A stretch of DNA of 64,000 nt from the NCBI RefSeq assembly GCF_009834535.1, contig NC_045705.1, forward strand, positions 32,054,001-32,118,000, given 5' to 3'. A program made the translations under genes and the position numbers. The notes beneath the pieces were generated by a model. The model did not search any database. It had not been told where the DNA came from and was given only the letters and a program-made list of their open reading frames with translations. The stretch comes from Camelus ferus. Lineage: Eukaryota. Below are positions 1 through 49,703 of this stretch, piece after piece (within the stretch, counting starts at the first letter, position 1; each line of letters starts with the position of its first letter).

Positions 1-808
1 ACCTTCCGTTCTCAGAGGTTTGCGTATCCGTAGGCCTCCATCTCTCTGTAACTACGCCTTTATAGGTAATCCTGGACTTGGGAGGCTATTTTGAATTGCA
101 TTCCTTATTTTTAGATTGTGTTATACTCATGTAAGCTTGCAGAAATGATCTTCTCGTTTTCAGGCAAGGATTTAAAAAGCTTGCTTTGAACCAAATCCTT
201 CCTTGTTAGGAAGATTAGAGTAACTGTTTAATTACTGAAACAGTTATTTTTTTGGGTGGGCGGTTAAAACAACCTGTTAGATATGTACAACTTCTGGGTT
301 TTGAGAATCATAGATAATTTAAAAACAACAGAGCACTTTGAGAATACCAAAGGTGAGGTGATCTTAGTGAGATCTCTAGACCAGTATAAGGATTAGTCAC
401 GGAAGATGGGACATGCAGAGAGCTGTTGTGGAGTTTTACTTCTGGCTGCGTTCTTCCTGAAAGGCCGCCCCTGCCTTTTATTTACGTTAAAGTTGACATC
501 TCTAGCGCCCCTTGTTATACCCTTTTAGTGGTACTGAGCAGCCCAGAGGCGCGGGGTCATCCATGTTATTCTGTTTGGGTGCTATGGGGAGGAAGCTCTT
601 CTGTCGTTGTTGTTCTGAAATCATGTTCTTGTGGGGTTTTTTAAATTAATTAATTTTCTGCCTTGAAGACACAAGAAAGAGACCAGGGTTTCTCAAACAA
701 TTTAGCCTTGAAAATATTTGAATACACTGGTTGGAGTCCCCTTTTGTTTTTCTTCTGTATTTCAGACACCTTCAGGCCCTTGATGGTTTGTAAGATCTTC
801 TATCTCCC

Positions 809-884
809 ATATATATATACACATACATCTATAATTACTATATATATATATGTGTGTATATATATATACACACACACACACACA
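809..884 (+). repeat. Compound (TA)n/(TG)n/(CA)n microsatellite
   Basis: Directly visible. Confidence 0.9.
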
Positions 885-1700
885 TCTCACCTCTAATTAC
901 TTCATATTGCAAGGGAGTATACAATTATTCATGGTTACCGGGAGCCACTGACTTAATTGCAGTGAGATGCTGTCAAGAACACAATGCTCCCTTCTGAACT
1001 ACAATGAAAATGGTTACTACGTCTTTCTGTCTCCGTAAACTACTGTAATGCAACCAAATTGAATGTCATGATTATAATAATAGAACTGAATGAGTTTCTT
1101 TCACAACGGCTACACCTGTTTACAACCACCACTGCTTCATTACTACACACTTGTCTTGTTGGCGGGGAGCCCTGCCACAAGGTTCCACTCCTGGCACTGA
1201 TCCCAGTTACATTCTTTCTGCAACTGGTACCCCCTGGTTCTCCACTCTTTCTAGTACTGCTAACTGCATAAAGTCAATTTCTAAGTGATTGATAGAAACA
1301 TGAACATTCAAATTCCTATCTTGGCTCAGACTATCTTTTCTGATTAAAAATCCTTTTGTTTTTCTTTCTTAACCCTGCAATTCTATGTTAACCTTATAGT
1401 TCAACCCAAAGTTCAAAATCCTATCATGATTTTGCCAATCAGGAAATACCCTGGACATTACTCAAGCATCTCAACATGTGAAGAGCACCCTCGATGTGCT
1501 CGCAATGCAGAAAGGCATAGGATTTGTAAAAGCAAATTCTTGCTTCTCCCAGGGTGTTATAATCGGGTTATAATAACCACATTGCTGCGACCCACGATTT
1601 GGAAGACGCCTAGGTGCCTACATCCCTACTCAGAGGGCATCAGCCTGTTGCTCTGGAAACAATGGTTGCACCCTGAATAATCAAGAAGTAAATTCTATTG

Positions 1701-1872
1701 CACGGGTTGACAAACTACAACCCATAAGCCAGGCCTATCGGTTCATGTATTGTCTGTGACTGCATCCGTGCCTCAGGATGAAGAATCAACATGTTGAAAT
1801 TAAGACTACATGGCCCACAAAACCTAAAATATACACTGTCTGGCTTTTTCCAGGAAAAGTTTGCTGTACCTG
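1701..1872 (+). mobile_element. hAT-Charlie MITE, MER58A-like, internally deleted
   Basis: Termini cacgggttgacaaact...aaagtttgctgtacctg, internal ggcccacaaaacctaaaata, and an 8-bp target duplication ttctattg/ttctatta. Confidence 0.8.
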
Positions 1873-2333
1873 TTCTATTAAATCAAGTCACTGTAATTGA
1901 GATGTTTATCTGTTAAAATATGGTAGTTCCTCAAAAAAATAAATGCATTCTCCTTCCCATAAACTTAGATTACAAATTTAAAAAACAGAGTGCCAGCTCT
2001 TTTTTCAATTTCAAAAATAAATCTAAGAATTGAATAGAACTGTGTTCATGTTTGGAGAGTAATACAAACCTTATTATCTCAAAATCAGTGGTTTTCATAG
2101 AAAATGAAGCTCACAACACAATGTTAAATTAAAGAAAGGATAATGAACACTATAACTATAATATGGCATGTATTGTATAAGTTTTATTTCCAGATACACA
2201 CTGATGAATACATATTCATGTAGCAAAGGAAAACCCGGAAGTCAACAATGAGTAAGAATCTTTGGATTGTCGCCCAATAGCTGATTTTTCTTTTGTACAT
2301 TTCTGTATTTTTCCAGTGTTTAAAGACAAAATA

Positions 2334-2423
2334 GGGGAGTGGATTTAGCTCAGTGGTAGAGTGCATGGTCAGCACGCTTGAGGTCTGAGGTGCAATCCCC
2401 AGCACCTTTATTAAAAAGAAAAA
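2334..2423 (+). mobile_element. tRNA-Ala-derived SINE (camelid Vic-1-like)
   Basis: GGGGAGTGGATTTAGCTCAGTGGTAGAG head, degenerate B box, A-rich tail, and a 12-bp target duplication TTAAAGACAAAA at 2320-2331 and 2424-2435. Confidence 0.9.
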
Positions 2424-2564
2424 TTAAAGACAAAAGATATCTTGTTCAACATTTTAAAAAGACAATTGATTAGAGTTTATGATGAAATTATTCCCCAATC
2501 TTCAGAAGAAATCAAATATGACCAAAACATCACACAGGGAATTGCTTCATCTAATTGCTCTATT

Positions 2565-2901
2565 TCTCATCCCCAAGGCGAGAGTCAACAATATTCTCCA
2601 GGGTTAAGCTCCCTAAGGTTTTGATGGCATATAAACGTAGCAGTCTGGTGTTAGGGGTCAGCTTTTTGTCTCCTTTTCTCTTTGTCATCTCTGAGTTTAT
2701 TTTTTAATAGATTAGAGGAAAAAGTCATTATTCCTGAAATATTCATTGCAGTATACTGTAGATTTCTGTTCCTATTTTTTTTTCAGGTTTATTACTATAC
2801 TAAAAATAGTAGAATTCTCAGCAGGAATTTTTCTGGAATCCATTAATATTAGCAAACAAACTCCATTAAATGAATAAGTCAAATTCTGCACTCCGGTGAG
2901 T
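2565..2901 (+). promoter_or_regulatory. Candidate promoter and first exon of the OR5D3-like gene
   Basis: Three O/E(EBF)-like sites (atccccaagg, ttctccaggg, ctccctaagg, about 2568-2618), CATTAA homeodomain-like cores near 2840 and 2864, and a donor at 2896. Confidence 0.55.
2870..2895 (+). CDS. OR5D3: Putative first coding mini-exon (MNKSNSAL + CG) of the OR5D3-like receptor
   Basis: ATG AAT AAG TCA AAT TCT GCA CTC CG is followed by a GTGAGT donor at 2896. This phase-2 end joins the G at 5489 to make CGG and continues in frame into [11 protein letters not shown]. Confidence 0.75.
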
Positions 2902-5488
2902 TGATTCAATCCCTATTTCATTTTAAAAGGAAAATAGCACATGTGTAAAACTAACGGCCAGGTGACCTATTTAGTGCAGCTCACTAGAAGTATTCAGTTC
3001 CTTATCTTTCACCACATTTATCTCTTACGATTCACCAGCCTACATCACTGAGAAATGTTTCAGTTTTTCTCAGTTGCAATGTTCTTATCCTTTACTTTAT
3101 CCACACAAACTTAAATAACAAATAAGAAATGTGTGTTTCAATGTGTCTTTTGTGCTTATATGCATTATTCCCTGGAATGTTTCTCGTAAGGAAAAAAACT
3201 GAGAATGAGGCTCGTGTTTTATAATTGTATAGTTTCTGAAAAGCCTGTTATAGTACTGAGTGCATAGTGGGTCTACGATGTGAAAATCGTTCCAGGAGAG
3301 ATAACACCGGAAGGGAGAGAAACAGTGGACAGGACATTCGTGTTCTCAGCTGAACACGATCGACACTTCCTGGGGCTAAATGCAAGATTGTGAACGTTGG
3401 CCACCAATAAACACAGAGTGCAGGAGGTGAAACGCAGAGCCGCAGGTGTGGGGAAGATGTGTGCATGAGGAGGAACTGAATACGCATGGCGAAATGTCTT
3501 TATCTTTGATGGCGGTGATTTCCTTCTCAGTCCTGGCTACTCAGACTTTGTTTACAAGCACCACAGGGGATGAACACAGATTTGGGAAAAAGTCTCTTCA
3601 GTTACAGAATCTGCATTCTGTGTTTGAGTATTTAACTTAAAACTCAGTCTTTTTAAAAAGAGTTTTACATTAAACTGAAATATACTTTCAGGAAATCATA
3701 AATGTGATGAGGGATTAAATCACAAGTGTCAAATCAAAGGACAGTAAAGGAACAATTGAAGAAGAAAAAGCAGGGCTATGTGAATGATGTCCTTCTGTAT
3801 GTACAGGAAAACCTCAAGTGTGCATAGAGAGGGTAAAGGTGTAATAACTGGAAAACAAAACAGTGTTTGATTTCAGCTCCTGATAAGACAGGATTTTTAC
3901 AGAATTCTGTGTGGAATGAACATCCCTTTATGCAAAGTGCCATTTTAGGTTTCAGAAAGATTTGGAAGTGGCTTTGAGAAGAATGAATTATAGCAAAAAA
4001 TTACTGTAAAAAGAAAAAAAAAAACAGTTGAAGCGTTTTGGAGGAACACAGGCCTTTTTAAAAAAAAGAATTCAGTGCGTCCTTTTATCTCCATACGTAT
4101 CTTTATTTTATGCTAATTCAGGAAGCTCAGGGCCCAGGAAGTTTGCACAGTGGCTGCTGTTTCCTAGGACTCCAGGTGTGTCTCAGTGCACTGTGAGTTC
4201 ACAGCATGCTGCTGCCTTAGTAGGCAAGTCTAACTTCTTTAATATTATTATAATATTATTACAATTAGAGTATTATGAGAGTTTTTACCCCAATATGCTT
4301 ATTATATACCTAGACTTTAGTCACTCACATACTCATATATTTATTTATTCAATACATATTATTGAGTGCCTACTTTCTTCCATCTTTGTTTGCATGAATT
4401 TGATTTTGCTGTGGAACAGACAATGATAAAATGGTAAATGACAGAAAATAAGTACAATGTCTACTAGGTTACAGATGTGGCTGAAGTTGTAATTTTTGAG
4501 GGCTGACAATAGTTGACGGAGTAGGACCATGGCCATCGGTCAAGTAGAGAGAAAATTATTGGATAAGATCATGAAGATAACAGTATAGGGCACTGAAAGA
4601 GTTACCTTTATGTCTGTGGAAACCTACTCAGAGCAAGAAAATCTTTAACTCAGTAGAAAACCACGGTCTAATCATACATCAGAAAGCAGTGCCCCATCTT
4701 TGGGAGTTTTGAGTTAGAGTAAGTTGACCATTTAATAATGATGTTGTAGGAAGTTCTCTGGCATAAGAAAAATAGTGTGAAGAGAATATAATTAAGTTTA
4801 TTTCTACCACGAGTCTCTTTAACTACTTGATAGAACAAGATGTAACAGTAACAGATTTTACAATTTTGATAATTAGATAAATGTAGCTGATGAAGTACAT
4901 TATTCTTCTGCAGGAAATTTCTAAAATATGAGGAGAGAAATGTGACTGAGTGTTAAGTAGTTAACTGGAAAGGTAAATTCAGTAATAGCTACACCAACCG
5001 TAGTTAAAAAAAAGCAAAATAAAGTAACTTGACCATTGTGCTGGGTCAATAATTCTCTTTTGAGTTCTAATTTCTCACAGTTAAATAAGTTAGGCAAGGA
5101 AGAAATTGTAAAAATGTATGATACACATTTCTTTCAAGAGCAGGACTTTAGCTGTCTCATATTCATGCAAAAAGCTACACTGATCTGTCTCATGAAACCA
5201 GCTGCCTCTGAGGGGACTGGATCTGATCATTTGAAATATAACAGGTCAACTCCATTGTTCCACTTTTCTCAACTTATTTTTCCATTTGCACAAATTTTAT
5301 ACTCACCCTATAATGGTGACATTAGTAAATTCTAGCTTTTAAAATAAGTTTAAGAATTGAAATCAAGTATTTTCCACAACACTACTTACAGATATTCACC
5401 AAGTCTCTTGACATTTCCTCATTTTAGCCATCCATGTCCAAATTTTGCTCCTCATGTCACTGAACCAACTTTCATATTTTGTCCACAG

Positions 5489-6431
5489 GAACCAAGAGAA
5501 TCAGAGTGCTGAGGTCACTTTCATTCTCTCGGGCTTCTCAGAGTACCCGGAACTCCAGCTGCCCCTCCTCCTGGTGTTCCTGACCGTCTACACGGTCACG
5601 GTGCTGGGCAACCTGGGCGTGGTCCTGACTATCAAGCTCAGTCCCAGACTCCACACCCCCATGTACTTCTTCCTCAGCCACTTGTCCTTTGCTGACTTCT
5701 GTTACTCTACAGTGGTTACACCCAAACTGCTGGAAAACTTGGTTGTAGAAGACAGAACTGTCTCCTTCACAGGATGCATCCTGCAGTTCTTCTTTGCCTG
5801 CATGTTTGTTGTGACAGAGACTTACACGTTGGCAGCGATGGCCTATGACCGATTTGTGGCCGTTTGTAGCCCTCTTCTCTACGCAGCTGTGATGTCTCAG
5901 AAGCGCTGTTCCTTGTTGGTGGCTGCGTCATACTCTTGGAGTGTGGCTTGTTCCCTAACGTGCACATACTTTTTGTTGACCTTATCCTTTTGTGGGTCTA
6001 ACATCATAAATAACTTTGTGTGTGAATACTCCGCCATTGTTGCTGTTTCCTGCTCTGACCCCTACATTAGCCAGAAGGTCCTTTTAGTCTCTGCCACATT
6101 CAATGAAGTAAGCAGCCTGATGATCATTCTCACTTCCTATGTTTTCATTTTTATCACTGTCATGAAGATGCCTTCCACTGGGGGGCGCCACAAAGCCTTC
6201 TCCACCTGTGCCTCCCACCTGACCGCCGTCACCATCTTCCACGGGACCATCCTCTTTCTCTACTGTGTCCCTAACTCCAAAAGTTCATGGCTCATGGTCA
6301 AGGTGGCCTCTGTCTTTTACACCGTGGTCATCCCCATGCTGAACCCTCTGATCTACAGCCTCAGGAACAAAGATGTGAAGGAGTCAGTGAAGAAATTAAT
6401 CAATATTAAATTGTTCTGTGAAAAAGTGTAA
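5489..6431 (+). CDS. OR5D3: Olfactory receptor OR5D3-like, main coding exon (322 aa when spliced to the 2870-2895 exon)
   Basis: Intact frame with [33 protein letters not shown] and [16 protein letters not shown]. Acceptor ttttgtccacAG ends at 5488. There is no ATG between 5489 and 5661. VSATFNE and [13 protein letters not shown] resemble human OR5D3P as I recall it; the symbol is from memory. Confidence 0.85.
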
Positions 6432-9400
6432 AGCTAGAAAATATTCATTATTTCTTTTTGAGAGTACTGTCAGGGTTTTTCAGTAGCAAATCAATACACA
6501 AATCTTGCTAACCTTGCAACTGAAAGTCCAAGATATGTTCACTCTTATGTGTAATGAAATCACTTTAAAATGACAATCGTAGGAATAAAAGACTTCTCAA
6601 AGTAAATTTTTGTTTCAGATTATGAACCATAAAGGTTTCTATGTTAATACACATGACCATGTGATTGTCCTGGACCAATTTTCATTCAATTAAGTCATGT
6701 GAAGTGTAGGATTTTTCAGATGATCTGAAGCGTTAGAGCTTATAATGAGGAAGCTTACTTCTCAATATGAATGTAGTAATTACGAGCAGTTTGACATAAA
6801 CACTAAATATCTTTTTTGTTATTCATTTATTTGTATTGATGTGTAGTAATATCTTTTAAGGAATGTGTATTTAATTCCACAAGAATAATTTTGGTAGTGG
6901 AAGATTCCCAGGCAAAAAAAATAAATAAATAAATCGGAAATATATCTCACATAAAACATCCAGATACGGTACAGTTAAATTATAACTGGCAACCATAACC
7001 ACAGTGCCACTATGTGCTAGTGCAAGAAAATGATGCGCATTTTGGAGCTATATGCCCATCAATCTGGTTTTTCCACTTAAGTCAATGTGGTTTTACTTTA
7101 TTTACTTCTTTATTGGAAATTTGATTGAGATACTTTTAGATTCACTTGAAGTTGTAAAAAAATAATATAGAGAGATCCCAATATCTTTTACCGTTTTCCC
7201 CATGATAGTATAATGTGGTAACCATGATATTGATCAAGATACATTACACAGATCTAACTGAGCACGTTACTTATTGATAGAAAGAAAACAATTGTGAGCT
7301 CCAGTAGGAGGCAGCAGTAGGAATCCTTCTGAATCCCTGGCTGCGCTGAGGTGGCTCCGCTGAGACTGGCTGAGCCCCTTGTGCATCGAGGCCGAGCTGA
7401 CTGCATCAGCCAGTCTTCACTCTGTACACCTGTGTGCACGTCATCTTCCTTGGGCCATTTGGCTAATGGCCTATGTTGAAAGCTGAGTCACATTAAATTA
7501 TCTCAGACAACAAAATAATATTTCAAGTTCCTGTTTGGAGTCTCACCTGTTGATGTTTTATGAGTCAAAGAAAACCATGTGGCTAAGCCCAAAATTAAGC
7601 TGCAACATAGTTATCTGCTTCTGGTAGAGCTGAAATGTTATGGGCCAGGAGTATAGGGCGACCTGAAGAATTCAGCTCAAAATCTGCGAAAGATTGATGA
7701 AAGCATTTACCTCATCAAAAACATCCTTCCTTGATAATGTCAGATAACTCAATGCAGATAACAGATAATCCATGACTATGATAGGTTTTACCAAAGTTTT
7801 AAAATAAATGATAGATCATTGGATTGCTTTAAGCAAATAATTGGTTGAAATTAAATATAATAACTTGCCTTTTCTAATTGTGTGTTACCAATCATGATAA
7901 AGATTTACAAGAAAAGAGTAAGAAGAGATGCATGTGTTGTGGTTCTATTAGTTTCTTGATCTAGGACACCTGTCTCCATCTTTCTATATTCTGTTAATTC
8001 GAACATCCCCAATTCTAGGGAAGTTAGCTCTTTCCTGCACTAATCATCACTGTGTCATATCAGGTTTCTTTCTTTTTTCTTTTTTAAATCAACTTTTCAA
8101 CACATGCTTAAATAATTTCCTTTCATAACCTCCTGGTGAGGTTTATATTTTCCCAAATAAGCCCAGATTAGTAGTGGTAATTTTTTGAAATAAACCTTCA
8201 AAGATGAGTATTTGGACATATCCTTGGCCTTGAAGGCAGTACTAAGCACCATGCAAATAAAAATGGAATTCCAGTAACCCATAGTCTGTAGTAACAGCAT
8301 GGTTTATTAAATTAGCCTTTTGAATGATTGTGATATAGTGGTCCCTGAATGAAGTATCTTGAAAAAATCACGTAGCTGATGCAGAATTCTTGTCATGGAA
8401 GACATGGTGGCCACAAGAAATGGGAAGGAGAGGGGTATGGATTCTGGCTTCTTCTGATTGCCCTAGAGAACTTACAGAAAAAAAAAAAAAATCCAAAATT
8501 CTGGGCATCAAAACTTTGGCAGAATTAACCATAAGAGAACGTGAAATATTTTTGATAGCCCCAAAGAATCTTCCTTTTTCTAAGCCACTGAGAAAATTTC
8601 CTAAATTTCATTGTGATAAAATTATGTGTCAGAAATTATATACTTCTCAACATGTGCTAATAATTTTATTGATGATGTGGTCTGCAGAGATCTGGGGTAC
8701 CCCTGGCATTCCAGTCTACTTTGCTATTTCCCTTTATTGTCTGTCAAAGTCTTTTGGTTATAGTCAATTTTTCTATCCCAGGCAAATGATAGATTTCTCC
8801 CTTTTGAAAACATTTTTTTTTTTAGCAATTTGACTGGGTTCATATACTTTTTCTAATATCTCTCTAGCTTTGAACCTCAACATGTCTCCTGAAAAGTAAT
8901 GTCCTACAGCTTAATTTTCCCCTCTTTTAATTTCTCCTTTGTTTTCTCTCTCTGCAGCCTATTGCTGCAGTAAGGAAAAAAAGACAAATTTTATAAATAA
9001 ATGCATTCTCTCATTTATCACTTGATCAAGAATATTTGGCACCCACTGGCTCAACAAATCTTTAACTTTTGAATTTTGCAGTACTTTATTGAAATATTTC
9101 TATATTTTTAACACACAAAGATAGCATATTACACATAATTAAGACATCCATTTTTTTTATTTATTTGGATAATGGAATCTCCAAACCCTCTCTTGGGACA
9201 GCCATAGTCTGGGTTTCTGAATCTAAAAACACCATCAGAACTTATGAAATTAAGGTCTTGAAGCTTTAACAAAACCACGCATTGGAGGATGAAAACAAGT
9301 TAGTACCACACACACACAGTTCTTTCTTTAACTAAAACCTGCATGCAATTCTGAACAAAATTTGGAGGGTAAAAATTTAGAATTATAGCATGACAATATA

Positions 9401-10329
9401 TAGAATCAATAGTATTAAAAGTAGGACTTGTTGCACTAATTTTTTTTTTCTGCCCACATGGACTTCAGCTATCTTACTCTTTCGGTTTTGCTCTCTAATG
9501 CAGATAGAGAAATTTGTAAAAGAAAAAAAAATCTGTAAATAGAAAAAAAAGTCTCTGTTTCAAGTGATCTTTTTAAAAATAATCCTTTGGTTGGATTTAA
9601 AAGCACTTTTGATGATTTAATCCCTGACAAGCTTTTAGTTGAAAGATCAACTGCTTTCACGTAGGCCAACCAAGAGATGCTCAAGCAGGTAAGCAGATAC
9701 TGTCTTTTTTCTTAGCCACTCCATATTAAAAATAGCTTACACTTGCAAATGTGAACCTCAATTAGGTGCTGAGTTGTGGACTACCACTTTGGTTTAACCT
9801 TTCAGTATTAGCTGCAGAAGAATTATCAACCCCTTTAAACAATACGTGTAACCTTTGTTTTCCGACGCCCCTACATATGCACGTATCTCAGGACTTCCTA
9901 ATCAGGAAAGTGTGTGGTGTAATTGCATTGGGTCAATATTTAGCCTCTGTGGCTGTCCTGAAGGGAAACAGCTGGACCCACGACCATGACCAGGATGCCT
10001 AAAATACCCCCACCCTCCCAACCCCCAACTCTATCAACCCCCAGCTGAAAGCATGCGCATTCCGGATGGAACAAAAAACATTGCGAATCTATATAAATAC
10101 ACGTCCAGACATAAGACTAAATAAACACATCCTATCAGCCACAATTATGTTAAGGTCATTAGAAAATATATTGTAAATTTTTTTATGATTTTAAGAAGTA
10201 TCATCTCTATATAGTGATCAATATTTTTAAGGCATAGGCAACATGTCAATGAGTCAGTTACACTCTAAGTTGAAGAAGAGGAAGTTTGCGTTAATTATTT
10301 TCTTTGTACCTCATGACAGTAAACTCTGT

Positions 10330-10660
10330 CAGAATTCTCCAAGGTCTATGTCCCCAAGGTTAGGCAGTTAGATATAAAACAAATAACACAATCATAGAGT
10401 ATAATTTCTAGGTCTGTCTATTCCTCAAGGGTATCTCCCTGCTCCTTTCACAATTTCCTGATAGTTGGAAAAACGACATTTTTTGGTATCTTTACTAATT
10501 ACATTTTGTAAGAATCATCAACTTTCTGATTAAAAGACTGGAAATATTTAAACAAAATTTTCAATTTTGAGACAGAGTATGTATGCAGCTTATTCATCCC
10601 AGCAAGGAAGCCATCAATAAACATACATCAGGAAAAGATGGCATTTGGTGAGTTGATTCA
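10330..10660 (+). promoter_or_regulatory. Candidate promoter and first exon of OR gene 2
   Basis: O/E-like ttctccaagg (10335), tccccaagg (10351) and ttcctcaaggg (10421). The donor context GGTGAGTTGATTCA at 10647 is identical to 2895-2908. Confidence 0.5.
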
Positions 10661-11210
10661 GCTTGGGATCATCTTTCATTCTGATCTCAGGGATTTTGGA
10701 ATCCAGCAAATTCTTGGCAGGGGAAATGTGTGTGAGCCGAGTCACAGCAATATTTACTTAGTTCATGGCTTATGTTCAGTAGGCTAATTTCTACTTTTAT
10801 TATCTGAGGACCATTGTCCTAAAACTGAAAATATGTCTCTGATCGCTATGTTAAGCCCATTAGGGGCTAATAGAAGAAACGGTAAGTGTAAGTCTTATCC
10901 TAAAAAAGTGATATTATTCAGAGAAAAAGCTAATGCACATTCAAATGTGCATGCATACACACAGAAACACATACACACATAATAAATAGCAAAATATGCT
11001 AAGCATTGTGTAAACATAATGATGTTATATGTGAAAAGAAAGTGCAGTAAGAGAAACATTTAAACAGCAAAGTTTTCTTGGAAGAGTTAGGTAGTAATTT
11101 GTGAAATGGTGACACAATGGGGGGAAAAGTGGGATCTCAGTGGGATAAATGGTTGAAGATTGGAAGATGTGAATGACTTGGTTTTGTACAATAAAGGTTT
11201 AAAATAGGGT

Positions 11211-11340
11211 GGGGAGGGTATACTCAGTAGTGGAGCGCATGCTTAGCATGCAGGAGGTCCCAGGTTCAATCCCCAGTACCTCCATTAAAAAAAAAGTATT
11301 AAGTAAATAACTAAACCTAATTACCCAACCCCCCAAAATA
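11211..11340 (+). mobile_element. tRNA-Ala-derived SINE (Vic-1-like)
   Basis: GGGGAGGGTATA...GCATGCTTAGCATGC...GGTTCAATCCCCAGTACCTCC followed by an A tract and a CCTAATTACC/C-rich tail. Confidence 0.9.
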
Positions 11341-12764
11341 ATACTTCTATGAGGTAAGTAGTTTTGTATTGACAACAGGATGTGGTTAGGTAGTTCCTAG
11401 AAGTATTACAGAAATCTAAGCTGAAACATTTTAATTTGATTCATTTAGCCTAAAATGCCTTCAAAAGTACTTATACTATTACATACCAGGTTAAGAAAGT
11501 CATTAAAGTTAATCTTATAGGTTGGACTGTGGTTGATAGGATAGTTGGAAACCTTATGTCTGGATGATTAGATAGCTAATAACAATGTAAATAAAGAAGG
11601 AGATACACGTTGAAAATTTCTCCTTTTGAATTTTTCTCTGATTGCCTTTCCCACAGTCAAAGATATGAAATGACAAAAAAAGTCAGACAGAACAAGATGG
11701 AGTTTGGAAAACCAGGGGAAAATGAAGACTACATGTAGGTAAATTAGAAATGCAGACAACCGTGACTCTCAGATTGAGGGAAAATCTAAATTTAAAAGGA
11801 ATCCAGGATATAAAACCCTTCTTAAAATCACATGGCAAATGTGCATGGAAAGACATTTTAAACACTTGGAACTGATGGCATTTTCTTGGAAAAAACAACA
11901 TTAGAAAATTCAGGTGGAAGGGAGCTTTAACTAAGTGTAGGACATGTTCTCAAATAATTTAAAGGCACACCTGATTTGAGACTTCTGCACTAAGCATTAA
12001 ATGACCAAGGATAGTCCTGTTGTTAGCATTTCATAGATGATAAAATTGAGGTTCATAAAATTAACAGTTTGCTAAAGCTACATATGTAATAAGGGACCAA
12101 GGCTGAATGAGCATTAATTAAATTAATTTAATTTAGGAATATGCTTCCTAATTTTGAGCCTTATAAATGACCATTTGGTGGGAGAGAGAACTTAGTTACT
12201 AGTGGAGTTTTTGAGGAGACCACTTGTAGATCCTGTTAAGTAGATGTTCTATGAGTCCTTAATAATGGGATATACTTAGAACAGCTAAACATTCAATCTA
12301 CCAATACAGACTTGTGAATGGAGAATACTTCTTTCTCCAAAGAAATTTACTAAACATGTTCTTCCTTATGTATTAAAAGTGTTGACTCTTCCTAAGGTCA
12401 CTTCTGCCATGATCATGGAGCTCAATTTTTTTTTTTTCTTGATTTCACTGTGTCTCCTTTGTTTTATCATGGGGCTATTCAATGCTCTAAGTATCACCTA
12501 CATTTAGAAATCATTTATATAAAATAATGCTATTCATAATTACTATTTTCTTCTTCTTTTCCAGATGAGGAAACGAAAGTTCTGAGGGATAAAGTGAATT
12601 GCCCATAATCAAATTCAGTTAAGTTGTCATGTAAGACTTTAAATGGAAGCTTTCAGAACCCTTGTGGGTTCACGATGACCATGTTGCCTTCATTAGTTTA
12701 GGTTGAGCTGTCCTGAGTTCCTCTTCCTCCACCTTCTCATGTTCTGCTGCTCAATATCAATCCC

Positions 12765-12797
12765 TTTCATTCATTTATTCATTTATTCATCTATTCA

Positions 12798-12844
<47 letters not shown>
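12765..12844 (+). repeat. (ATTC/ATTT)n grading into (ACTT)11 microsatellite
   Basis: Perfect ACTT x11 at 12801-12844, ending 15 nt before the ATG of OR gene 2. Confidence 0.97.
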
Positions 12845-12845
<1 letters not shown>

Positions 12846-12859
12846 AAAAATCCAGAGCC

Positions 12860-19599: not shown

Positions 19600-19932
19600 T
19601 CAAAACTCTCTGGGGCATGATTCCCAAGGTCTCTCGGGTGGATGTAAACACACAACACCATCCCTCAATTCAGCTTATTAGTCTGGCTCACCCTTGAGAG
19701 GTTGTCTGTGTTGTCCCTGATTCTTTTTTTTTTTTTTTTAATGAGAAAAATCTAATTTTCTTGATGCCTTTCCTGGAATATATTTTGGAAGATGTTCCCA
19801 TATCCTAATTACAGGCTACAACAATTTTTATGAAAAGTTTTATTTTTTGTGAAATAATTTTCAAGAATCTTATTAAATCAAAGAAGACCTCAGGAAATCA
19901 GTCTATACAGAGTATCTGACTTCTGGTGAGTT
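19600..19932 (+). promoter_or_regulatory. Candidate promoter and first exon of OR gene 3
   Basis: O/E-like ctctctgggg, ttcccaagg and cccttgagag (19606-19702). Donor ctg|GTGAGTT at 19926. Confidence 0.5.
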
Positions 19933-21130: not shown

Positions 21131-21286
21131 NNNNNNNNNNNNNNNNNNNNNNNNNNNNNNNNNNNNNNNNNNNNNNNNNNNNNNNNNNNNNNNNNNNNNN
21201 NNNNNNNNNNNNNNNNNNNNNNNNNNNNNNNNNNNNNNNNNNNNNNNNNNNNNNNNNNNNNNNNNNNNNNNNNNNNNNNNNNNNNN
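21131..21286. other. N gap, 156 nt
   Basis: Run of N inside an L1. Confidence 1.
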
Positions 21287-21366: not shown

Positions 21367-21500
21367 NNNNNNNNNNNNNNNNNNNNNNNNNNNNNNNNNN
21401 NNNNNNNNNNNNNNNNNNNNNNNNNNNNNNNNNNNNNNNNNNNNNNNNNNNNNNNNNNNNNNNNNNNNNNNNNNNNNNNNNNNNNNNNNNNNNNNNNNNN
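21367..21500. other. N gap, 134 nt
   Basis: Run of N inside an L1. Confidence 1.
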
Positions 21501-27915: not shown

Positions 27916-28419
27916 ACTGGAGTGTGGGATTTGTAATACAGTTGAGTAATTAACAATTATTTTTAGATGGATCTTTTTTCCTTATTTCAAATTCTATAGT
28001 TCACGTTTACATCAATGAATATGTATTATTTCAATAATTCAAGATCTTAAGGTAATCAATGGAGTAGATGTGATGGTGTAGTTATCTCTAATGATTTAGA
28101 AGAAAATGCGTCTACCAAATGACACAAGAGACAGTGTTTCAACTAATTATATGGTTTGCGGTCCACTGAGTAATATTCCAATTACAATTCTCTGTAGTTT
28201 ATGTCTTTATAGTCATGGAGACAAATATAAAGCTCAAAGTTTGGCAGTTTAGACTGTGAAGTCAATTTCAGTATTTTCTTTGTATTCCTTGACATTCATG
28301 TCCTGGAAATAGAATGCCAGTTTACCGGCATACTCACTGAAATTTACTGCTATTTTTATTACAAGCCCCAAACCTGTGGCTATCTTAAAGAATATGTGAC
28401 TACGGAGAAGAAAAGTACC

Positions 28420-28487
28420 TGAGGTTTATTAATCATAAAAAGAAATCCTCGGTAAAGTAACCAAGAACTCTTGGTTCCAGGTCAGTT
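28420..28487 (+). promoter_or_regulatory. Candidate first-exon end of the OR5D13-like gene
   Basis: ttattaatcataaaaagaaatcctc...ccag|GTCAGTT (donor 28481) aligns loosely with the exon ends at 2840-2902 and 19870-19932. Confidence 0.35.
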
Positions 28488-48522: not shown

Positions 48523-49703
48523 AGTCAATTTGCTAGTATTTTGTTGAGGATTTTTGTATTGTATTCATAAGAGATATTGGCTGTAATTTTCTTTTTTGTG
48601 ATATTTTTGTCAGGTTTTGGTATCAGAGTGATGGTGGCCTCATAAAATGAGTTTGCAAGTATTACTTCCTCTTTAATATTTTTGGAATAGTTTCAGAAAG
48701 ATAGATGTTAACTCTTCTCAAAATGTTTGGTAGAATTCACCTGTGAAGCCAATTCTGCAAAGAAGACATCCAGATGGACAACGGGAATGTGAGAAGATAC
48801 TCAATATTGCTAATTATTATTAGCAATACAAGTCAAAAATACAATGAGGTATCACCTCATACCAGTCAGAATGGCCATCATTAAAAAGTCTACAAATAAA
48901 TGCTGGAGAGGGTGTAGAGAAAAAGGATCCATCCTACACTATTGGTGGGAATTGAAATTGGTGCAGCCACTATGGAGGACAGTACAGATGTTATTTAATA
49001 AAACTAAAAATAGACTTCCATATGATCCAGCAATCCCACTCCTGGACATATATCTGGAGAAAACTATAATTCAAAAAAGACACATGCACCCCAGTGTTTC
49101 AGTAGNNNNNNNNNNNNNNNNNNNNNNNNNNNNNNNNNNNNNNNNNNNNNNNNNNNNNNNNNNNNNNNNNNNNNNNNNNNNNNNNNNNNNNNNNNNNNNN
49201 NNNNNNNNNNNNNNNNNNNNNNNNNNNNNNNNNNNNNNNNNNNNNNNNNNNNNNNNNNNNNNNNNNNNNNNNNNNNNNNNNNNNNNNNNNNNNNNNNNNN
49301 NNNNNNNNNNNNNNNNNNNNTGTTGCTTATAAGTGGAATCTAAAAAAAAGGAAAGAAAAGATACAAATTCAAATTATTTTTACAAACCAGAAATAGACTC
49401 ACAGACATAGAAAACAAACTGTGGTTACTGAAGGGAAAGAAGAGGAGGGACAGAGTAGGAGTTTGGGATGAATAGATACACATTACCATATACAGAATAG
49501 ATAAACCACAAGGACCTACTGTATAGCACAGGGAACTATATTCAATTTCTTGTAATGAGCTGTAATGGAAAAGAATTTGAAATATATATATACACATGTG
49601 TATATATATATAGCTGAATCGCTTTGTTGTACACCTGAAACTAACATTGCAACTCAACTGCACTTCAGTAAAAAATGAGAATTAAAAAAATAAAATAAAA
49701 AAG
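48523..49703. mobile_element. 5'-inverted L1: minus-strand RT-region piece (48523-48751) joined to plus-strand ORF2 end, 3' UTR and A tail
   Basis: The minus piece translates to GFTGEFYQTF...NSFYEATITLIPKPDK...KILNKILAN. The plus piece encodes MRYHLIPVRMAIIKK...YDPAIPLL. Confidence 0.85.
49106..49320. other. N gap, 215 nt
   Basis: Run of N inside an L1. Confidence 1.

Follow-up and report, generated by a model that had tools for sequence, protein, structure and literature searches.

A camelid olfactory receptor gene whose start codon is probably supplied by an upstream mini-exon

Introduction

The olfactory receptor (OR) genes with a split coding sequence (CDS) that were curated by Barnes et al. 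(2020, BMC Genomics 21:196; PMC7055050, Supplementary File 3) include human OR5D3P. This gene (ENST00000641440) encodes 323 aa and is interrupted at aa 9 by an intron of 2161 bp, while mouse Olfr1177-ps, Olfr1174-ps and Olfr1175-ps are curated split ORs of 319-320 aa that likewise carry their intron at aa 9, the curated mouse intron being 1540 bp (PMC7055050). In that study, OR5D3P expression was seen in human olfactory samples, the human and mouse counterparts were expressed at the levels of coding genes, and some genes were found to have both split and single-exon isoforms (PMC7055050).

We analyzed a window of 64,000 nucleotides of Camelus ferus DNA (NC_045705.1, positions 32,054,001 to 32,118,000) that contains an OR gene, gene 1, proposed in an earlier sequence-only reading to be split in the same manner. 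That reading named OR5D3P among the split ORs, and the curated list, with its intron at aa 9, bears this out. Like OR5D3P and Olfr1174-1175-1177, gene 1 would take its start codon and ~9 residues from an exon that precedes an intron at aa 9; its main exon is without a conserved initiator Met, and the OR5D cluster family is common to both. Its predicted ORF of 322 aa compares with 319-323 aa in the human and mouse set, and its intron of 2593 nt with introns of 1.5-3.5 kb. The camel gene differs in that its mini-exon is one codon shorter (26 vs 29 nt), in that it is not annotated as split, and in that its junction is predicted from sequence.

Results

The translation of the main exon contains the OR signature motifs LHTPMY, MAYDRF/Y, KAFSTCxSH and PMLNPxIYSLRN, and Pfam domains 7tm_4 (PF13853) and 7tm_1 (PF00001) are on record for the window protein P0002 and for all protein matches. 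Gene 1 is an olfactory receptor of class II, family 5, subfamily D. An Rfam scan of positions 1-12000 gave no match. The first ATG of the main exon lies at 5661, after TM1, and the GNLGM motif reads GNLGV in gene 1, a Met-to-Val change that the sequence-only reading had reported correctly. A full-length intact ORF, one of the features by which Barnes et al. (2020) define a split CDS, is obtained only on joining two exons (Table 1). The letters of 2870-2895 are ATGAATAAGTCAAATTCTGCACTCCG, that is, ATG plus 23 nt up to the donor, followed by GTGAGT, and the acceptor at 5488/5489 reads ...tttgtccacag/GAACCAAGAGAATCAGAGT (here and below, a slash within a sequence marks an exon boundary). The joined exons encode 322 aa without a stop, beginning MNKSNSALR/NQENQS..., with sequons NKS and NQS. 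The mini-exon, its ATG, donor and phase, the length of the product and the extra NKS sequon are all as had been proposed. A 322-aa protein beginning MNKSNSALR was not found among the 100%-identity protein matches, and therefore no existing record has the spliced model.

Table 1. Positions within the window of gene 1, of competing start sites and of paralogous 5' exons.
Feature	Position	Strand	Remarks
8-nt coding piece ATGTTCTT behind annotated camelid 316-aa models (MFL/NQENQS...)	623..630	+	Donor GTGGGG, 5/9
Conserved non-coding stretch 5' of the ATG	2787..2869	+	From alignment; boundary and role putative
Predicted coding end of the upstream mini-exon	2870..2895	+	ATG, 7 more complete codons, 2 bases of codon 9 (MNKSNSAL + CG of Arg)
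Splice donor GTGAGT	2896..2901	+	8/9 consensus positions; GTRAGT invariant in all aligned species
Predicted intron, 2593 nt	2896..5488	+	Phase 2, within codon 9
Exon of 331-aa Camelus ferus model (MKPAASEGTGSDHLKYN-R; MKPAAS...)	5192..5244	+	AT in place of the donor GT in alpaca
In-frame ATG in the intronic pyrimidine tract	5454..5456	+	Camelus only; start of contiguous 325-aa database model P0002
Main coding exon	5489..6431	+	Last base of codon 9, 313 codons, TAA stop; intact 7-TM OR
Homologous 5' non-coding exon of g2, end TTG/GTGAGT	10554..10647	+	nhmmer E 0.0037; no ATG at aligned place
Probable homologous 5' non-coding exon of g3, end CTG/GTGAGT	19877..19925	+	nhmmer E 0.09 (weak), donor aligns; no ATG at aligned place
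Homologous 5' non-coding exon of g4, end CAG/GTCAGT	28373..28480	+	nhmmer E 1.7e-9; no ATG at aligned place

A scan of the spliced 5' region found no ATG besides that at 2870 before 5661. The stretch 2787..2869 is free of ATG, and an in-frame TAA lies immediately 5' of the start codon, which has a weak but conserved context (T at -3, A at +4). This stretch may be promoter sequence, or else the 5'UTR part of the mini-exon, for which a conserved ...tttttcag/ at 2786 is a possible acceptor. With splice sites scored as consensus-match counts out of 9 positions, the donor at 2896 is the best in-phase donor within 1..5488. Thirteen GT sites in this interval reach at least 7/9 of the donor consensus, and 4 of the 13 have an in-phase open ATG, so that the pairing of an ATG with a donor is by itself weak evidence. 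We judge the mini-exon to be real because other mammals have an orthologous exon 1.

The mini-exon aligns to exon 1 in nine other mammals, and its ATG and donor are invariant across the resulting 10 species of 7 orders. Its coding part measures 26 nt in the three camelids (bactrian, dromedary and alpaca), against 29 nt in every non-camelid, and always ends in phase 2; the camelid frame was kept because the deletion comprises one whole codon. A camelid A-to-C change at exon position -2 is synonymous (AGG to CGG, Arg kept). BLAST identity of the mini-exon to annotated exon 1 is 69-78% (Eulemur, Glossophaga, Castor, Moschus, Trichechus). Hyena and zebra also possess an intact in-phase mini-exon, though their annotated starts lie elsewhere. 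At the other end of the intron, which measures 1755-3026 nt in orthologues, the acceptor cag/GAAYC is invariant among aligned sequences. Three further features by which Barnes et al. (2020) recognize a split CDS are present, namely an initiator Met conserved in orthologues, a splice junction (donor, acceptor and phase) that is likewise conserved, and the lack of a conserved downstream Met that could open a full-length single-exon ORF. Conservation alone does not prove that the 26 nt are coding, since the non-coding part of the exon is conserved to about the same degree. Conservation of ATG, phase and donor was one check put forward for the split; another, dN/dS of the main exon, also favors a coding gene. 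The main exon is intact and of equal length in bactrian, dromedary and alpaca, and the 313-codon frame is also intact in seven other species. Pairwise dN/dS ranges from 0.13 to 0.29. Between bactrian and alpaca, where 13 non-synonymous and 18 synonymous changes were counted, it is 0.21 (binomial p = 2.5e-5), close to the ~0.2 that characterizes the exon. The main exon is under purifying selection.

In the protein tree, gene 1 falls in a clade with 98/99 support, apart from window genes g2-g7. Members of this clade start MNKSNSSAFR, MSKSNSSTLR, MNKANSSVLR or MNHSSASVFR, and thus have an N-terminus of 9-10 aa in common. The N-termini of Eulemur XP_069326691 (MNKSNSSAFR), Glossophaga OR5D3 (MSKSNSSTLR), Castor (MNKANSSVLR) and Peromyscus XP_076424794 (MHTSNSSALW) resemble that of the camel protein, and MNHSSASVFR marks a sister class in primates, manatee, elephant, musk deer, pig and hippo. 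All these are predicted orthologues of gene 1, with a homologous exon 1, donor and acceptor and a main exon that is 76-86% identical, but with 29-nt coding pieces unlike that of the camel. Comparison of these predicted N-termini indicates two old mini-exon classes (MNK/MSK... vs MNH/MTH...) and places the camel gene in the first. Gene 1 groups with OR5D3-named proteins and has its predicted intron in codon 9, as expected of the OR5D3 / Olfr1177 orthologue group; orthology to human OR5D3P and mouse Olfr1177 is drawn from gene names, the position of the intron, the length of the ORF and the tree. Of the proteins so named, the Glossophaga 'OR5D3' is in the gene 1 clade and the macaque 'OR5D3' in the gelada cluster. 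Taken together, these comparisons identify gene 1 as the putative camelid member of a mammal-wide OR5D3 / Olfr1174-1175-1177 split-CDS clade.

Plain blastn of 2600-3200 against the window returned no paralogous 5' exons, but an nhmmer profile search did detect them (Table 1). The aligned 5' exons of g3 and g4 had been said to be without an ATG, and they are; their homology to the mini-exon is significant for g4 and suggestive for g3. At the acceptor, g3 reads cag/GAACCATAATG... and g4 reads cag/GAATCATGATG..., in agreement with the sequences given earlier. Genes g2, g3 and g4 are ordinary ORs in which one coding exon follows a non-coding 5' exon. They have in common with gene 1 the two-exon layout, the homologous 5' exon, the position of the donor and the acceptor. 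In contrast to gene 1, however, they carry an ATG 3-8 nt past the acceptor in the main exon and none at the aligned place of the 5' exon. The pattern is complementary throughout, in that all members of the gene 1 clade are without a main-exon ATG and with an upstream ATG, while g2-g4 are the opposite. Since the paralogues keep a homologous 5' exon and donor without the ATG, the start codon appears to have moved into a pre-existing 5'UTR exon.

Two RNA-labelled runs (X1 and X2) contain 0.97 of the main exon together with its 3' flank. They also contain 1.00 and 0.68 of 2600-3200, an interval made up mostly of flank and intron. As these runs carry flank and intron in the manner of DNA, they say nothing on expression or splicing, and for the same reason we dropped the idea of ectopic expression in the reproductive tract.

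Discussion

We consider it very likely that gene 1 is a split-CDS OR with its start at 2870 and a splice joining 2895 to 5489. Transcription would begin at or upstream of ~2787, and the exon ending at 2895 would give the initiator ATG, residues 1-8 and two bases of Arg9. Splicing of the GTGAGT donor to the conserved acceptor would then allow translation of the 322-aa receptor, with two N-glycosylation sequons in an N-terminal tail that is expected to be extracellular, as in other ORs. We infer that camel olfactory neurons would splice at this junction and that a working protein would be made. The earlier description of the gene as probably functional agrees with the dN/dS values, with the conserved ATG, phase, donor and acceptor, and with its clade; the split gene is probably both real and functional.

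As to its origin, the split likely arose by migration of the start codon. The 5'UTR exon, donor and acceptor would have pre-existed; ~13 nt with the main-exon ATG would have been lost and an in-phase ATG gained in the UTR exon, with no insertion of an intron and with the frame kept since.

A receptor made in Camelus from a contiguous single-exon ORF (325 aa) beginning at ATG 5454, instead of or alongside the split form, is improbable. This codon, which the sequence-only reading overlooked when it gave 5661 as the first ATG (correctly for the main exon, but not for the sequence before it), is in frame, and the nearest stop upstream of it is the TGA at 5409. The resulting model is already in databases as P0002, Moschus, Equus, Vulpes and Myotis have comparable annotated read-through models, and genes with split as well as single-exon isoforms were described by Barnes et al. 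(PMC7055050). However, ATG 5454 is located within the pyrimidine tract, 35 nt 5' of the invariant acceptor, and its use would need intron retention, an alternative acceptor upstream or an intronic promoter. The AG at 5427, a possible upstream acceptor, is not conserved, and its use would bring an out-of-frame ATG at 5433 into the transcript. Moreover, alpaca has no ATG at the equivalent of 5454 and carries in addition a 2-nt indel that breaks the frame, and the ATG is likewise absent from the equivalent position in Eulemur, Glossophaga, Castor, Moschus (at this locus) and Trichechus.

We regard it as very unlikely that the annotated camelid models are correct, with a start at 623-630 (MFL, 316 aa) or, in C. 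ferus, at 5192-5244 (331 aa). Published predictions for bactrian, dromedary, alpaca and C. ferus use these starts, and a start at the equivalent of 623 is consistent with the gene spans in dromedary and alpaca, but the donor at 631 matches only 5/9 of the consensus and reads GTGTTT in alpaca, and Equus is without an ATG at the site aligned to 623. The 'MIL' exon of hyena is located within the intron and has no homology to 623-630, which suggests that start codons were rescued ad hoc. The exon at 5192 fares no better, as its donor reads AT in alpaca, while in Eulemur and Glossophaga the GT is missing from the aligned site and stops interrupt the frame. Every annotated model begins exactly at its ATG without a UTR, which suggests that the models are not transcript-based.

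Least probable of all is a start-less pseudogene with a conserved 5'UTR exon and an incidental ATG: the main exon indeed has no ATG before 5661, in-phase ATG-donor pairs occur by chance (4/13 good donors in 5.5 kb) and the UTR part is conserved as much as the coding part, but such a reading is opposed by the 313-codon frame, which is uninterrupted in three camelids and in seven further species, with dN/dS between 0.13 and 0.29 and a significant synonymous excess within camelids, by retention of the ATG, phase and donor in 10/10 species with a whole codon as the sole indel, by the lack of the upstream ATG in paralogues having their own main-exon ATG, and by expression of the human and mouse counterparts at coding-gene levels.

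Returning to the split CDS with its start at 2870, the camel gene is an ordinary member of its class, and the curation of 2020 already covered both class and clade in human and mouse; it is nothing new in kind. Its interest lies partly in the window itself, a clean within-locus illustration of a split by relocation of the start codon. If this route is general, many 'split' ORs would be captures of UTR exons, and start-less OR 'pseudogenes' in any mammal would merit re-examination together with their 5' exons. For the camelids, the gene model of one OR is corrected: the suspicion that pipelines would mis-start this gene proved justified, as three different non-conserved starts are now on record (MFL..., MKPAAS... 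and the ATG 5454 ORF). Across the clade, at least 8 different solutions for the N-terminus are present among the protein matches, including a truncated macaque 'OR5D3' of 270 aa. Automatic pipelines scatter the N-termini of this clade, and counts of functional ORs obtained by single-exon or ad hoc start-rescue methods therefore misclassify such genes.

Structure of the predicted split gene

Seven class II olfactory receptor (OR) ORFs, all intact, form a tandem array on the + strand of the window; the first, g1, is a Camelus gene called OR5D13-like or OR1155-like by database matches. The sequence-only reading had proposed that a 26-nt upstream coding piece (mini-exon) supplies the start codon of g1. 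Joining this piece, with its GTGAGT donor, to the main exon acceptor indeed yields an open reading frame of 322 aa, interrupted in codon 9 by a 2593-nt intron. The Met of the GNLGM motif is replaced by Val (GNLGV), as had been noted. The claim that the first ATG lies at 5661 held within the main exon, while an in-frame ATG upstream of the acceptor had been overlooked; a contiguous 325-aa ORF, recorded as database model P0002, runs from it.

Features of g1 and of the 5' regions of its paralogues g2-g4 (window coordinates)
Feature	Position	Strand	Remarks
g1 mini-exon	2870-2895	+	reads ATGAATAAGTCAAATTCTGCACTCCG, then GTGAGT
g1 main exon start	5488/5489	+	preceded by ...tttgtccacag
g1 stop codon	6429-6431		TAA
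In-frame ATG of P0002	5454		35 nt 5' of acceptor
Closest upstream stop	5409		5' of in-frame ATG 5454
Acceptor-like site	2786		...tttttcag; pyrimidine run, cag/GTTT; window 2770-2790
MFL piece	623-630		rival start
g4 5' non-coding exon	28373-28480		E 1.7e-9; ~1.7 kb 5' of g4 ATG; intron ~1.7 kb
g2 5' non-coding exon	10554-10647		E 0.004; intron ~2.2 kb
g3 5' non-coding exon	19877-19925		E 0.09, weak; intron ~2.0 kb
(TTAC)n microsatellite	12790-12850		directly 5' of g2 acceptor and ATG
Runs of N	21131-21286, 21367-21500, 49106-49320		first two within presumed g3 5' intron

By chance alone, in-phase ATG-donor pairs are not uncommon: of the GT sites in 1..5488, 13 agree with the donor consensus at 7/9 or more positions, and 4 of the 13 have an open in-phase ATG. 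The donor at 2896 is the best of these four (8/9 positions). The context of the start ATG at 2870 is weak (T at -3), yet conserved, and the spliced 5' region before 5661 contains no other ATG.

Conservation of the mini-exon among orthologues

Conservation of ATG, phase and donor had been named as a check on the split model, together with main-exon dN/dS. Protein records of many orthologues from other orders begin with 10 residues clearly homologous to MNKSNSALR, including MNKSNSSAFR (Eulemur), MSKSNSSTLR (Glossophaga, 'OR5D3', and Artibeus), MSKSNFSALR (Pteronotus), MNKANSSVLR (Castor) and MHTSNSSALW (Peromyscus). A sister N-terminal class, MNHSSASVFR, is found in Old World monkeys, lemur, manatee, elephant, musk deer, pig and hippo. 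At the DNA level, nine orthologous loci were compared; window 2700-3050 is 69-78% identical to the exon 1 region of non-camelid orthologues. In both alignments of the mini-exon region (A1 and A3), the ATG and a GTRAGT donor are invariant and the frame is kept, the coding piece measuring 29 nt in every non-camelid and 26 nt in 3/3 camelids, owing to the loss of an entire codon. A camelid A-to-C change at the penultimate exon base (AGG to CGG) retains Arg. The acceptor, cag/GAAYC, is likewise invariant among orthologues, and hyena and zebra also possess an intact in-phase mini-exon despite annotated starts elsewhere.

The acceptor-like site at 2786 is kept in most aligned orthologues, the exceptions being Castor, Hyaena and Equus. 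Since its pyrimidine run and cag/GTTT are conserved, the mini-exon may form the 3' part of an internal exon of 109 nt (2787-2895), fed by another exon further upstream. Alternatively, 2787-2869, which includes a conserved CATTAAT motif, would be promoter sequence.

Rival starts and annotation of the clade

Camelid records conflict over the N-terminus of g1: bactrian, dromedary and alpaca records give MFL/NQENQS (316 aa), a C. ferus record gives MKPAASEGTGSDHLKYNR/ (331 aa), and P0002 gives the contiguous 325-aa ORF. The ATG at 5454 is missing in alpaca, which also carries a frame-breaking 2-nt indel, and in the other orders compared. The donor of the C. ferus 331-aa exon is AT in alpaca, and stops lie in frame in Eulemur and Glossophaga. 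The MFL piece has a donor matching only 5/9 consensus positions (GTGTTT in alpaca), and zebra is without an ATG at the aligned site. The hyena 'MIL' piece sits within the intron and is non-homologous to the MFL piece. All of these models take the ATG as their first base, with no UTR; their starts look like ad hoc start rescues.

Automatic annotations of the OR clade across mammals (including database proteins P0121-P0138) carry many incompatible N-termini, for example MGR/, MNR/, MIL/ and MFL/; some models read through into long extensions, and one macaque 'OR5D3' is truncated to 270 aa. Judged from these records, the start-codon problem is systematic for the whole OR5D3 clade.

Selection on the main exon and RNA-labelled runs

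Bactrian, dromedary and alpaca all keep the 313-codon main exon intact. Its Nei-Gojobori dN/dS was 0.13-0.29 across all pairs, in the purifying direction; bactrian and alpaca differ by 13 non-synonymous and 18 synonymous changes (dN/dS 0.21; binomial p = 2.5e-5 against neutrality).

Runs X1, X2, X4 and X25 (study P1) and others, labelled transcriptomic RNA-Seq, 'reproductive system metagenome', contain exon and non-exon parts of the locus at high share. In X1 and X2 the main exon is present at 0.97, and 2600-3200, most of which is non-exonic, at 1.00 and 0.68; therefore, these runs carry the locus like DNA. They appear to contain host genomic DNA and are not to be taken as OR expression.

Relation to known split ORs

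In a maximum-likelihood tree, g1 groups with dromedary and alpaca, then with other artiodactyls, within a larger clade including bats, carnivores and horse (support 98/93). All of these lie within a 98/99-supported clade that takes in every split-N-terminus protein and stands apart from g2-g7, the other window OR genes. A macaque protein named OR5D3 shares a 90% cluster with the MNHSNASVFR protein of gelada.

Barnes et al. 2020 (PMC7055050) catalogue four curated split ORs of the g1 clade, in each of which amino acid 9 marks the intron position: human OR5D3P (ORF 323 aa, intron 2161 bp), its mouse orthologue Olfr1177-ps (319 aa, 1540 bp), and mouse Olfr1174-ps (320 aa, 3114 bp) and Olfr1175-ps (320 aa, 3470 bp). 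The sequence-only reading had tentatively named OR5D3P as split, and correctly so; OR5D3P counts are high in that study's human olfactory samples. Camel g1, as predicted, compares closely (322 aa vs 319-323 aa; intron in codon 9 vs aa 9; 2593 nt vs 1540-3470 bp) and matches the split ORs of PMC7055050 in every sequence criterion used there. Taken together, the original observation is real and its interpretation as a predicted split-CDS gene is right, with g1 the putative camel representative of a split-OR clade that is mammal-wide and already curated. The worth of the case lies in annotation correction, and it also illustrates neatly how a start codon may move to a 5'UTR exon.

The mini-exons fall into two old classes, MNH/MTH...VFR and MNK/MSK...ALR (in the tree, Artibeus P0031/P0056, Moschus P0069/P0045, hippo P0053/P0066). 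Within one bat species, main exons of both classes cluster together, a pattern that points to gene conversion among tandem copies or to a recent duplication in which exon 1 was exchanged.

Paralogue 5' exons and origin of the split

A search with a profile of the g1 mini-exon region recovered homologous 5' non-coding exons of g4, g2 and g3, whose donors lie at the same aligned position as that of g1. Opposite AAATGAAT in g1, the three paralogues read AAAGTAAC, CAATAAAC and AAATCAGT, so 0/3 have an ATG there; this agrees with what had been read for g3, where the homology is weak, and g4. The acceptors of g2-g4 are homologous to that of g1, with the paralogue ATG 3-8 nt downstream, in the main exon. 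Because 5' exons, donors and acceptors are homologous in the paralogues, the intron and 5' exon are older than the split. The OR5D3 clade would have lost the main-exon ATG and acquired one, in phase, within the UTR exon. In the tree, g2 and g3 are sisters (82% identity).
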